From the NCBI RefSeq assembly GCF_021869535.1, contig NW_026262668.1, forward strand, positions 13,082,001-13,146,000: DNA of 64,000 bases. The letters are read 5' to 3'. Below the pieces are notes generated by a model. The model was not told the origin of the DNA. It ran no database searches and saw nothing but the letters and a program-made list of their open reading frames with translations. Each line of letters starts with the position of its first letter. The stretch's first letter is position 1. A program made the translations under genes and the position numbers. This stretch comes from Mytilus californianus. Lineage: Eukaryota. Below, in pieces: positions 11,888-36,802 of the stretch.

Positions 11888-12369
11888 TTTTAATGAAATA
11901 TTATTATTTTTTGTTAAAATAGATATTTTCCAACAATTTATGTTTTATTTCTTTGTGAAATTCATGTTCGGATTATTATTATTTCAAATTCAACAATGAT
12001 TTGTTGTGGCAGGTTGAAAATATAAAAAAATGACAATGTTTAAAATTTCTTTTGATACTAGAAATAACATGTTACTAAATCACAAAGGACAAGGTTTGTT
12101 TTTTCCAAAACGATGGCTTTCAATTTCAACTTAATCAAAAATGTCACAGTTTGGTCCCGAAATGGATCTATTTAAAATGCGTGAATGCTAAGTAAAACAA
12201 ATTTATCATAAAAGTACACTAGAAACTCCAATGTATAACCACGTGTTATCCGATGGAGAATGTCTGTCATAAAGGTGTCACATGTTTAGCAGGCACAATG
12301 TATAATAAAATTAAAATTTGATATGGCGGCATGGTTATTCACATTATCATCCTGTACGAGAGACAAAAT

Positions 12370-12675
12370 AGCTGATCTGAAAGTTACATCATCTACTTGC
12401 CACTATACATCATGTACTGTGTTACAACCCTAGATAAAGCCGACAAGGAAAGGCATTTCATCGACTACCGAAAGCTATACTTTTTTATGTAACCTAGGTG
12501 GTCGAGTGGTCTAGGGCGCTGGACATGGTGCAGGCGGTGTTGCCACGATGTCTATCAGCTATTAGAGTAATTATGAATATAATATGTGTTTTCAGTCGTG
12601 TATCACCTTCGCTGGTGATCCAATGCATGGATCTGTCGCAGAGTTGACGTACTTATCAATATATATATATATACC
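12370..12675 (+). mobile_element. Diverged copy of the 442-bp tRNA-headed repeat family, ending in (TA)n
   Basis: Homologous to 34215-34380 (leader + A-box) and to 34075-34145 (tail). Confidence 0.75.
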
Positions 12676-13183
12676 TATAATTTGATAGAAATCATTATTT
12701 CTCTTCCCTCTTAGTCATTTTTAGTGTCACTACTTCATTGCAGTGTACTGCCGTGAAGTAGATTTGAAGTTTCTTGTCATTTTAATGTTCTAATCTCTTT
12801 TGATTTAACGTCGATATGTTAAAAGCACTTTTCCAAATTAAGAAACTGTACAGTTAAAAAAAATAATATAAACCAAAAAGTACACGAAAATTGTGTTCAC
12901 GTACATTGCAAGTACAATTTCTACAATAAAGAAAAAATTGATAATCGGTGTAGCTTCTAAATTGAATTTCCGTAGTCTAGTAGGTTTTTTAAGGTTTATA
13001 ATAGCTTTTCCTATTTACAAGATAAGCGAAATATGTTAATTATAATCAATACTGATTGGGAAAATAATATTAAGCAATAATTTGGTTAATCCCGAAAAAA
13101 AAATGCTACTTCTATAGACAGTAAGAAATTTAAATTTTCATCAGTTTCCATCGTTCAAAATAAGATTTCTGGTTTAAATGAAC

Positions 13184-28357: not shown

Positions 28358-28947
28358 CTTACTGCAGACAAGTGTTAATACAATAGCAGTGTTGCGTTAT
28401 TATGCTATAGGTTGCTAGAACTTATATTATTAATTATATATAGTCAGGTTATAGAATGTGGACATTTTTTATGCACTGGCCAACTTAAGAGTTTGTTTGT
28501 TTTTTGGGTTTTTTTTTTTTTTTTTTTATAAAATGACTAAATTAGTCTTATCAGATGATGTACGACTTGTAAACAACAGATCATAATGAAAACACAATCT
28601 TAATCAATCTTTAATTGTTAAACTGTTACCTTAATTATCTAGTCATTCATCAAAACTTATCAGTAGCTATCAATATGCCTTTTGACAATGAATTAAGGTA
28701 AACAAAACACTCGTGACTATCAGAAGATGCATACATAAATTGGGGTATTAGTTCTGTTAACCCCTAGGTTATCCGATAGAGAAAATATGCCGTAGAGTTG
28801 TCACATATCTAGACGATTTAAATAAAACATATTGATATGACTGCATGGTTAGTACTGTTATCATCGTTTACGACTGTCAAAAAGAGCTCATCTGCATGAC
28901 ATTTTATGTATTTGCCACCATACACATCATGCACTGCGTAACAATCC

Positions 28948-29326
28948 TTGATGAAGCCTAGTAGGAAATGCATCACTCGGCTTTCAAAAATTATATTTTA
29001 TATAGACTAGTTAGCCGAGATGTTTAGGGCGCCTGAGACAGTACACGAGTAGTAACTGCGAGAAGCTAGGGTTCAAATGTCGATGAGGGAACACAAACAC
29101 TGCCACCTGCATATATGAAAGGTTTCTAAGCACAGTAATGTATAATTGAAAAAGAAAATTCGTAATAACACAAAGAATAACGTGAAAATAAATGTTAGCG
29201 ATCTCAGCACCCAAAATATCCGATGAGCCAATACGACGGCTGAAAGCGCTAACAACTATTGCTTTCAATTTTGTTTTGGACTTGAACGTTACTGATGAAG
29301 GTTAATCCACAAAAATGCTTCAGACG
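28948..29326 (+). ncRNA. Three degenerate hammerhead-like motifs in ~380 bp
   Basis: TTGATGA..ATGCAT-C (28948-28974); CCGATGA-GCC..GGC-T-GAA-AGCGCT-A (29220-29251); CTGATGA-AGGttaatCC..AAATGCTT-C-AGACG (29292-29326). Confidence 0.45.
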
Positions 29327-33692: not shown

Positions 33693-33731
<39 letters not shown>

Positions 33732-34499
33732 TACGTCTGAACCAATGACAACTCTACAACAGATTTATCCATAGGATCACCAGCAGTGATGGTGATACAT
33801 GGCTGTGTACATTCTGTATATACAACTCGTCTAAACATCAACAATGTTAGATCTGTAAATTTGCTTTCGCAAATTTTAAGTTCTTCCCTCGCCGGGATTC
33901 GAACTCGTCTAGCGCGTCGGATACAGTGCAGTCGATTTGGTGTCACGATATCTCAGTTGCATGAGTTCGAATCCCGGCGAGGGAAGACCTAAACATTTGC
34001 GAAAGCAAACTTACAGATCTAACATTGTTGGGCTGATGTTTAGACGAGTTGTATATACAGAATGTACACAGCCATGTATCACCATCACTGCTGGTGATCC
34101 GATGAATAAATCTGTTGTAGAGTTGTCACTGGTTCAGACGTATTTATAAAATATAATTATTTCTGTGACTGTATCTTGCATTAATTTGTAGGATCCTTTA
34201 CAATGAATATTTCAGCTGATCTGTAACAATTCCATCTTCAAGCCTTATATATCATGTACTATATTACGACGCTAGATTAAAATTGACGAGAGAAGGTAAC
34301 ACCCGGCCACCGAAATCTTTATTATTGTGAAGCCTAGGTGGTCAAGTGGTCTAGCGCGTCGGATACAGTGCAGGCGATTTGGTGTCACGATATCTCAGTA
34401 GCATGAGTTCGAATCCCGGCAAGGGAAGAACTAAAGATTTGCGAAAGCAAATTTACAGATCTAACATTGTTGGGCTGATGTTTAGACGAGTTGTATATA
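33732..34499 (+). mobile_element. 442-bp tRNA-headed non-coding repeat: 175-bp inverted segment + 1.3 tandem units, inside (TA)n
   Basis: Arms 33732-33906 and 33963-34142. GTCTAGCG at 33907 and 34349 gives a period of 442. A-box TGGTCAAGTGG at 34339-34349 and B-box GTTCGAATCC at 34407-34416. Confidence 0.9.
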
Positions 34500-34597
34500 T
34501 ATATGATACGTTCATCCTGTTTCGACTCTTTAAAATTCAAGAGTCTATCCTAAATTGAGGTAAATTATATGGCCTTCCAAGTACCGTTTTGATCCCT

Positions 34598-34643
34598 AAC
34601 ATCACTGAAGAGACATTAATTGTCGAAATCCGGATATGGTGTT
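34598..34643 (+). ncRNA. Minimal type I hammerhead ribozyme with intact catalytic core
   Basis: AACATCA / CTGAAGA / GACA-ttaat-TGTC / GAA / ATCCGGAT / A / TGGTGTT. It has a 7-bp stem I, a 4-bp stem II and an 8-nt palindromic stem III. Predicted cleavage is after AUA at 34636. Confidence 0.85.
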
Positions 34644-35130
34644 CAAATTTTTGCACCTTATGTTTGCGATATACCATCTTTTCCACGAGTTTATTGTTTT
34701 CTGTTTGGTATTAAATTTTTAATTTAGATCCATGATACATCTGGTGATCAATTTATTTGGCAATTGCCAATGGCAGTCAGCAGGGTTTAAGAACATCAGT
34801 TGATCGACCTGTTAGTCAAATGCGTTTTGTTAAAATATACTTTTCACTTTTTGGTCTTTTGGAAAATGTTGTTTGTGCTGTATTTAGACCCCTCTAACAA
34901 GAAATTTCTTTTACGGCACACGTATAAAAATTGCGGTTTTTATCCAACGCAATCATAGGTTTGAACGTTGTTTTCAATTTAGACTTGTTTATATTTTTTC
35001 GTTTGGGCTAGTATTATATTTTCCTTCGGGTTTATATGATCCGTTCATCCTATTTCGACTCTTTAAAATTCAAGAGTCTATCCTAAATTGAGGTAAATTA
35101 TATGGCCTTCCAAATACCGTTTCGATCCCT

Positions 35131-35176
35131 AACATCACTGAAGAGACATTAATTGTCAAAATCCGGATATGGTGTA
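35131..35176 (+). ncRNA. Second hammerhead copy with G12->A substitution
   Basis: Same as 34598-34643 except that GAAA is AAAA at 35158 (a CpG site) and the terminal stem I base differs. Confidence 0.75.
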
Positions 35177-36802
35177 CAAATTTTTGCACCTTATGTTTGC
35201 GATATACCATCTTTTCCGCAAGTTTATTGTTTTCTGTTTGGTATTAAATTTTTGATTAAGATCAAATTACATCTGGTGATCAATTTATTTGGCAATTGCC
35301 AATGGCAGTCAGCAGGGTTTAAGAACATCAGTTGTTCGACCTGTTAGTCAAATGCGTTTTGTTAAAATATACTTTTCACTTTTTAGTCTTTTGGAAAATG
35401 TTGTTTGTGCTGTATTAAGACCCCTCTACCAAGAAATTTGTTTGACATGCACACGTATAAAAATTGCAGTTTTTATCAAACGCAATCATAGGTTTGAACG
35501 TTGTTTTCAATTTAGACTTGTTTATATATATATATAAATAATGTCATAGCGTTAGAAAAGAATTGACCGAATTTTGTGATTCAAAACCTGATAGTGCCAA
35601 CAGTATTGAAATTTAACATCTTGAATATCTAACACATTTTAAGCAAGTAAGCAGTTTAATCATTTCTGGGTCGTTAATGAAATGCATCGGATTGTCAAGT
35701 GCTCGCAAATGCATGTTACTGATTTCTAGTTTACCATTATTTTTTAATCAAAGTCATTTGACATTTTACATATTGCTACAAAATGAAAATATGTTCGACA
35801 TCCGAGAATTAATGTTCACTGAATATAACTAAAATACGTTGGCCGTTTCAGAATCTAAAGAACTATGGGTTATTTAATTGTACCTACCCCAAAAAGAAAA
35901 TAACGTCACGTCATTGGTTGCATTTACATTGTTTATGACGTTTTAGTGTACATTTTTGGGAATATCACCCAGATTGCATTAGATTCTGAAACGGCGAATT
36001 ATGCGAAATGTTCTACATTCGATGTTTTATCTAAAAGTAGGAAAGCAACTGTTACAGTCCAATAGTTGATTGTTTCCGTTAGACTGTAATTTGGTTGCAG
36101 TCTATAATTATGTAAAATATCTCCAAAGTGTTTAAACGTGAAATGTATACTTTTTGGGAAAATAAATAAATTATAAAGAATTGATTTTTTTTCTTTTCAG
36201 CAAAATCCAAATTTTTGGAATTGTTTTCAGAATTGCATCTATTTGGTAAAAATTGTGTGATTACCTCTGGATCTGCACCACGGTGCCATTCTATTGCAAA
36301 AAAATAAGTCTGAAAAGAGTTGCCAGTTTATTGGAAATTTAAGTTAATTCTATGTATATTTTCTAATGATATGCATTTAAAAACATAAATTGAGTAAAAT
36401 ATCAGTCGACAATGTCACCTTTTTTTAATTCATTTCAAATTAAATTAAAACACTTATTAAACTTGTATTAATTGGTACATATGTAGAACGACCCAAATGA
36501 ATGCCTTGGTATCATAGAACGCCTAGTATAAAAACGATGATTGATCATCGACAATCTAGACAAATTGAATATGATTTCTTTTATCAAACTTTAGTGGTTT
36601 TAATCTCCCGTAAATGGCAATGTTTTGCAGTAGAACATGTCTATAATGTCATATACATTAATTTGTTATGTTCAATTACTTATCTTTGTACACAGTTTCG
36701 TGTTTACTATCTAGATATTATTTATTTTCTTTTTCCGTCTACTTTTTAATAATATCATTTCCTTGAAAGGTCGATCGGACAGTTTGGACTAAGCACACTT
36801 TT

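Follow-up and report, generated by a model that had tools for sequence, protein, structure and literature searches.

The RNA of a 442-bp retroelement family of the mussel Mytilus californianus has very probably had its fold kept by selection, through compensatory evolution in the lineages that founded its subfamilies and acting on a plus-strand RNA, which is abundant. The family was analysed from a stretch of 64,000 nucleotides (the window), for which a preliminary description had reported base-pair covariation between two copies and had proposed that the helix concerned was selected at the RNA level. This proposal was supported by four independent kinds of observation: pairs compensated in several lineages, the contrast between fixed and private changes, the strand asymmetry between G.U and A.C, and the strand-specific expressed RNA.

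Subfamilies, insertions and copies in the window

The family is a non-coding tandem retroelement, whose unit measures 441 bp in subfamily A, 434 bp in B and 426 bp in C. The longest stop-free stretch of the unit is 78 aa, and no ORF exceeds that length. The unit is ordered as head, body, tail and leader, the leader being approximately 120 nt long. In the mussel genome the family numbers thousands of copies. Queries of the assembly (1.65 Gb in 175 contigs) with subfamilies A, B, C and D returned 1,780-2,936 first-look candidates each, which serve as a loose upper guide to copy number, and exact pattern counts across the genome were about 1,700-2,900. The matches to subfamily B from the genome search had 92-94% identity. 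The two window copies stand for two large subfamilies, A (34214) and B (12370).

Insert blocks measure 0.2-4.4 units, with about 40% of them above 1.05 units. The 3′ end of the insertions is fixed (in A, ...GACGAGTTGTATATA) and usually continues into (TA)n, with (TA)4+ at the 3′ flank in 34-74% of insert blocks. The 5′ end is variable, and an inverted, 5′-truncated copy lies on the 5′ side in 16-47% of the blocks. The A locus of the window combines (AT)n, an inverted partial copy, one full unit and a partial unit that runs into (TA)n at 34499 (Table 1); this union of tandem and inverted copies with (TA)n is the signature described for Penelope-like insertion (PMC8557442).

The interval 12370-12675, presented in the preliminary description as one copy of the family, turned out to be a composite. 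Up to 12552 it belongs to a B copy, with the head cut at about position 61, and from about 12562 it continues as a C-like piece. In a blastn comparison with the B unit, 12232..12552 shows 92% identity over positions 183-434 of the unit and 98% over positions 2-61. The B part and the C-like part would have been joined either by template switching or by an internal deletion within a mixed lineage. The old diverged copy E retains a C-G key pair (the swapped pair discussed below) while many of its other pairs have decayed; its relatives in the genome are only about 25 and weak.

Some neighbouring repeats were recorded as well. On contig C1, C-type heads form two regular arrays, one of 14 units with 468-bp spacing (866706-872807) and one of at least 6 units with 465-bp spacing (46707114-46709904). 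Leader-pattern matches are absent from both, which suggests a satellite-like derivative with an altered leader. Within the window, a tandem array with a 21-bp period (TAACTCGCAACTCGACCKTCG, present in some 10 or more copies) at 2637-2921 is unrelated to the 442-bp family.

Table 1. Copies of the 442-bp family and elements of the leader-head structure in the window
Feature	Position	Strand	Basis
Subfamily B copy: tail, leader (12370-12493), first ~61 nt of tRNA-like head	12232..12552	+	blastn vs unit consensuses
Leader strand of distal 10-bp helix in B, GTACTGTGTT; partner 12522-12531 (GACATGGTGC)	12414..12423	+	
Leader strand of 8-bp helix in B, CCCTAGAT; pairs with 12509-12516	12428..12435	+	
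P2 of B copy: GACTACC 12463-12469 with GGTGGTC 12497-12503; encloses GAAA and P3	12463..12503	+	
P3 hairpin of B copy: GCTATA, T-rich loop, TGTAAC	12474-12479, 12488-12493	+	
Head strand of 8-bp helix in B, GTCTAGGG	12509..12516	+	
C-like body/tail fragment (unit 148-267), outside the hairpin	12562..12683	+	83% identity to C unit
Old diverged copy E, nearest to B	28722..29119	+	~72% identity to B
Inverted, 5′-truncated partial A copy abutting the direct copies; (AT)n before it at 33693-33728	33718..33906	-	
Full A unit (head, body, tail, leader); leader 34214-34331	33902..34343	+	442-bp spacing
Leader strand of distal helix in A; partner 34362-34371 (GATACAGTGC)	34256..34265	+	
Leader strand of 8-bp helix in A, CGCTAGAT; pairs with 34349-34356	34270..34277	+	
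P2 of A copy: GGCCACC 34305-34311 with GGTGGTC 34337-34343; encloses GAAA and P3	34305..34343	+	
P3 of A copy, with loop between the strands	34316-34321, 34328-34333	+	
Second, partial A unit (head and body); terminus is the family's fixed 3′ end GTTGTATATA(TA)n	34332..34499	+	
Head strand of 8-bp helix in A, GTCTAGCG; directly 3′ of A-box-like TGGTCAAGTGG	34349..34356	+	

Structure and covariation of the leader-head duplex

Some 100 nt of the head, reaching from the A-box region across the former D and anticodon arms and ending shortly ahead of the B box, are complementary to the leader. The resulting duplex comprises about 55 pairs, interrupted by conserved bulges and including G.U pairs, and there are two local hairpins besides. 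Its outermost helix is formed by TTCATGC with GCATGAG and the second by ATATC with GATAT. Moving inwards, the distal 10-bp helix (GTACTGTRTT with GAYACRGTGC) is followed by 2 bp beyond a bulged A and then by the 8-bp helix. Inside the 8-bp helix, the three-way junction bears a hairpin of 3 bp whose loop, GACGAGGAAA, is invariant. The innermost elements are CAC with GUG, P2, the sequence GAAA and finally P3, a 6-bp hairpin with a T-rich loop that lies directly 5′ of the head and caps the duplex. Five G.U pairs, the bulged A and the asymmetric loops are kept in all subfamilies.

Two of these helices had been recognised in the preliminary description. The letters and coordinates given there for the 8-bp helix were exact in both copies, and the second helix (12463/12497 in B and 34305/34337 in A) pairs in both, with one G.U each. 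These 8 + 7 bp are therefore correct as far as they go, although they understate a duplex of the size described above. An alternative helix, CGAC/GTCG versus TGAC/GTCA, for which covariation had also been suggested, had to be given up, because it rests on GGTCAAG of the A copy in the window, a private CpG decay present in 2 of 33 A copies.

The predicted fold was obtained repeatedly. From the consensuses of A, B and C, RNAalifold predicted 63 pairs, of which 45 are invariant, 9 are changed on both sides and kept, 6 carry one-sided compatible changes and 3 are broken. An independent RNAalifold analysis of 38 real copies yielded the same leader-head helices. The A and B copies of the window fold in this manner with z = -3.6 each, compared with -2.6 and -1.0 for the minus strand. 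In folds of the whole unit (MFE of -125 to -133 kcal/mol vs about -102 to -105 for shuffles), the head-leader duplex is predicted to be the closing stem of a branched rod, and the UAUAUA of the insertion 3′ end is predicted to sit in a large unpaired loop.

The pair for which a G-C to C-G swap had been reported is diagnostic: subfamilies A, D and F have G-C, B has C-G and C has U-A, and the window copies carry G34271-C34355 (A) and C12429-G12515 (B). Among 136 distinct local copies it is U-A in 49, G-C in 47, C-G in 36 and G.U in none, so that 132 are paired and 4 unpaired. On contig C1, 26 copies, taken as leader and head pattern matches linked by coordinates, comprise 18 with G-C, 4 with U-A, 3 with C-G and 1 with G.U, none being unpaired. 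The swap is thus real and extends over whole subfamilies in three Watson-Crick states.

Covariation is not restricted to this pair. When the consensuses of A, B and C are compared, 15 of the 18 variable pairs are still paired, 9 of them via changes on both sides; 300 column shuffles yielded 1.3 such doubly changed pairs on average and never more than 5. Shuffling the columns also weakened the consensus energy, from -76.5 kcal/mol to -36.6 ± 4.1. In the 38 real copies, 93.4% of cells pair, and sliding the partners by 1-3 columns lowers this to 32-41%; both sides are changed in 135 cells, vs 7-16 in slid and 44 ± 5 in shuffled alignments, and 0 of 500 shuffles match the observed value. The consensus structure behind these counts had been predicted from the very sequences that were counted, a dependence that the shuffle, slide and private-mutation controls mitigate. 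More compensated changes were found in subfamily D (consensus from two copies plus pattern samples), in F and B2 (both known from few sequences or short patterns) and in the expressed variant X described below; the independent subfamily lineages are few (about 6-7). Among the 100 listed of 1,710 exact matches genome-wide, P3 reads GCTTGA/TCGAGC in D, GCTTTA/TAGAGC in F and GCTATA/TATAGC in B2. In P3, pair 4 takes the forms U-A, U.G, A-U, G-C and C-G across A, F, D, B, C and X, and pair 5 takes U.G, U-A, G-C and A-U across the subfamilies including X.

Neutral decay, strand and expressed RNA

Because inserted copies decay neutrally, their private mutations show what is to be expected without selection. 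Those at paired sites left the pair intact in 106 cases and broke it in 264. Fixed subfamily differences behaved in the opposite way, with 15 variable pairs kept and 3 broken (Fisher p=4.4e-6 vs private). One-sided transitions at Watson-Crick pairs are informative about the strand. Private ones produced G.U 74 times and A.C 92 times, whereas among fixed ones, counted by hand from consensus, expressed-variant and pattern comparisons, G.U exceeded A.C by about 13:1 (binomial p=0.002; Fisher vs private p=4.5e-4). This fixed-versus-private count of G.U and A.C took the place of a structure-blind alignment of the leader with the reverse-complemented head, which the asymmetric loops made poor. An excess of G.U in fixed but not in private changes points to a constraint on the plus-strand RNA rather than on double-stranded DNA or the minus strand. 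The approach illustrates that, in repeat families, dead copies supply covariation tests with a built-in neutral control.

The existence of such an RNA was examined by mapping four RNA-seq runs from 2026, three of them stranded, on locus L017:1000-2900, where one A copy and one C copy are located. When 31-letter words were sampled from the stretch, they turned up in runs with four different organism labels. With about 6% of each run read, depth over the A-type copy reached about 1,500-2,000 in the stranded runs, with a strand bias of 20-100:1 in the orientation expected of plus-strand RNA. Hundreds of plus-strand reads pass from leader to head across the T7 run in the P3 loop (L017:1603-1616; window ~34316-34333). 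Reads spanning leader to head mean that both strands of the helix are present in one RNA. Reads across the T5-T7 run further indicate that the T-run is no efficient stop or that the RNA is circular or multimeric, so that a unit-length RNA with its own terminator would be an incomplete picture, at best part of it. The reads across the leader-head junction are equally compatible with circles and with multimers.

Most reads are 90-95% alike, which indicates that one variant, here called X, is dominant. Variant X is known from read tables alone, as changes relative to A present in >95% of reads, and a pattern search of the assembly, in which the positive control gave 536 hits, did not find it. Two of its changes, T1549G and A1648C, turn a U-A pair of the distal helix into G-C, a compensatory swap. 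A1554C with C1642G converts A.C into a new C-G pair, by which the 8-bp helix becomes 9 bp, and C1588A with A1630T converts C.A into a new A-U pair. Its P3 reads GCUCU/AGAGC, with a second compensatory swap of pair 4 from U-A to C-G. Three one-sided changes each give G.U, and the loops change too. No pair is broken by the well-supported changes; position 1591, in the leader strand of P2, is G or C depending on the run, and C would disrupt the G.U pair there.

Two further observations were made in the same data. In run X21, 217 of about 1,016 RNA fragments start exactly at L017:1577 (window ~34292), between GACGAGG and AAA in the invariant loop of the small covarying leader hairpin, a pile-up that was not flagged in two sister runs. 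Processing or cleavage of the RNA at this site could explain it, as could a hot spot of the library. Expression, with weaker strand bias, was also seen for the neighbouring 533-bp tandem element (window 34500-35530; L017:1793-1991).

Explanations that dispense with a selected RNA have to be weighed against these data. The first observation comprised two copies, and one of its helices reflected private CpG decay, which is what two unrelated substitutions in two decayed copies, or an artefact of alignment or ascertainment, might look like. Such an origin is hardly credible once larger copy sets are considered, where the key pair has subfamily-wide states in three Watson-Crick forms with 4/136 and 0/26 copies unpaired, nine doubly changed pairs stand against a shuffle mean of 1.3, and sliding lowers pairing to 32-41%. 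The preliminary description had named a chance swap as the outcome that would overturn its reading, and covariation lies far above both the shuffle and the slide controls. A more substantial alternative regards leader and head as arms of a DNA-level inverted repeat, in which the leader was matched to the head by gene conversion, arm repair or re-templating. The arms are indeed complementary over about 100 nt, and inverted 5′ copies joining within the head are common in the family, which makes this origin of the leader plausible; the leader probably goes back to an inverted, incomplete copy of the head such as these insertions generate, its later history being compensatory. As an account of how pairing was maintained, this alternative is very improbable. 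Conversion or re-templating would remove bulges and G.U pairs, yet all subfamilies have kept the asymmetric loops, the bulged A and five G.U pairs. Fixed one-sided changes gave 13 G.U and 1 A.C against 74 and 92 among private ones, an asymmetry that argues against conversion of DNA arms, re-templating of the leader from the head and a hairpin in minus-strand cDNA. In addition, covariation extends to hairpins that are not copies of the head (the 6-bp P3 and the 3-bp stem with the invariant loop) and are too short for conversion, and the minus strand folds worse.

Selection could instead have acted on a fold of single-stranded cDNA, for instance a fold-back that primes the second strand and makes inverted copies. 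Inverted 5′ copies are frequent, and a hairpin at this place could promote snap-back. The first-strand cDNA, however, is the minus strand, in which the conserved G.U pairs become C.A mismatches and the consensus fold is 15 kcal/mol weaker than in the plus strand, with 9 broken pairs; it is the plus-strand RNA that is abundant. This explanation is therefore slightly less probable still than the inverted repeat. In another form of it, the hairpin may be one of plus-strand DNA. Selection on the plus-strand RNA fold is by far the preferred reading.

Proposed copying mechanism and known elements

The head bears A-box-like (TGGTCGAGTGG) and B-box-like (GGTTCGAATCC) motifs, and the B box, although unpaired, does not vary between subfamilies. 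No recognisable tRNA accompanies these motifs: ARAGORN found none in the element, and Rfam gave no tRNA match even at E<=10. Derivation of the head from a tRNA is suggested by the box motifs, and these together with the strand-specific RNA make an internal Pol III promoter plausible. Depletion of T-runs in the unit, which would have spoken for Pol III, was not significant (P=0.06-0.41). Rfam searches of the element at gathering and E-value thresholds returned no hammerhead or other family, although such negatives are weak for small ribozymes. Inspection of the unit by hand did not find a hammerhead topology either; its sole CUGANGA (CUGACGA directly before GGAAA, CCGACGA in B) has no helix II. 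In the neighbouring 533-bp tandem element, Rfam detected no hammerhead at E<=1.

A mechanism that combines Pol III boxes, a folded RNA template and a Penelope-like reverse transcriptase can be put forward tentatively as the working model with the best support, and we would give it, taken alone, somewhat less than an even chance. In the DNA, the A- and B-box-like motifs would act as an internal Pol III promoter. In the unit-length, multimeric or circular transcript the duplex would close a branched, rod-like fold, and this folded RNA, possibly circular or multimeric, would be the template of the Penelope-like enzyme. A nicked (TA)n target might prime synthesis where it meets the exposed UAUAUA loop, after which the enzyme would circle round a circular or oligomeric template. 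Priming at (TA)n on such a template would produce a fixed 3′ end, a variable 5′ end, copies exceeding one unit and both tandem and inverted copies. The closing duplex may serve RNA stability, hold the ends together or be recognised by the enzyme. No autonomous partner was identified, and the tail had no similarity to other repeats within the window.

A more specific reading, that the family is a hammerhead-less counterpart of the retrozymes, is unlikely. According to it, the tRNA-type promoter would make the RNA, the duplex and P3 would bring the unit ends close to each other for processing and circularisation, and Penelope-type rolling-circle reverse transcription would be primed from (TA)n at the UAUAUA loop; the pile-up of 5′ ends between GACGAGG and AAA may then mark the processing site. 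If true, a hammerhead-less route would be a new source of abundant animal circRNAs and would involve perhaps an undescribed processing motif.

The closest described elements are the metazoan non-LTR retrozymes, which in Mytilus galloprovincialis are repeats of about 350-390 nt (Cervera and de la Pena 2020; PMC7229834). Copies beyond one unit were proposed to arise from retrozyme circles (PMC7229834). Retrozymes and the 442-bp family are both short non-coding tandem repeats of mussels, with multi-unit genomic copies such as a circular or oligomeric template would give, abundant strand-specific RNA, a rod-like self-paired predicted fold and a presumed dependence on Penelope-like elements. Short tandem repeats and abundant self-paired RNA are thus found in the 442-bp family, whereas the type I hammerhead that each retrozyme unit carries is not. 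The unit is also slightly longer, and it has A- and B-box-like motifs, which are undescribed for retrozymes.

With tRNA-derived SINEs, including the HCD-SINEs of bivalves (PMC11481361, PMC4758252), the family shares shortness, lack of coding capacity, high copy number, box-like motifs, a 3′ microsatellite and subfamilies from successive master copies. Some bivalve SINEs also form tandem or palindromic arrays (PMC11481361, PMC4758252). In contrast to these SINEs, the 442-bp head lies mid-unit, behind a complementary leader of about 120 nt, and no tRNA is detectable in it. Insertions routinely exceed one unit and come with inverted 5′ copies and (TA)n targets, a Penelope-like and not a LINE signature; no LINE-like tail or target-site duplication was seen in insertions of the family. 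Classification as a tRNA-derived SINE was rejected on head position, tRNA detectability and the LINE-type insertion. A different comparison is offered by the Alu/7SL SINE RNAs, in which compensatory subfamily changes preserve the fold of the transposition-competent RNA, a fold inherited from the parent small RNA. The 442-bp family likewise shows compensatory changes among subfamilies, but its tRNA cloverleaf has been lost and the head pairs with a separate leader.

Penelope-like elements, which are abundant in Mytilus, make tandem and inverted insertions with a (TA)n bias (PMC8557442). The family shares with the Naiad and Neptune clades (Craig et al. 2021, PMC8557442) partial tandems, an adjacent inverted 5′-truncated copy, frequent 5′ truncation and the (TA)n insertion bias, that is, the insertion features expected of a passenger. 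It differs from them in having no reverse transcriptase or endonuclease ORF, and it can therefore be at most a passenger of Penelope-like elements. In the literature we did not find a Penelope-type passenger with a tRNA-type promoter module described. In many invertebrates the genome is dominated by Penelope-like elements and the passengers that depend on them, and to our knowledge the copying of these elements is not understood with respect to the origin of tandem and inverted copies, the targeting of microsatellites and the form of the RNA template. In conclusion, the 442-bp family is a putative passenger, apparently ribozyme-less, with a probable promoter of its own, whose fold evolution has mapped pair by pair, and it offers concrete, testable elements in the closing duplex, the P3 hairpin, the invariant loop and the exposed UAUAUA as presumed priming site.
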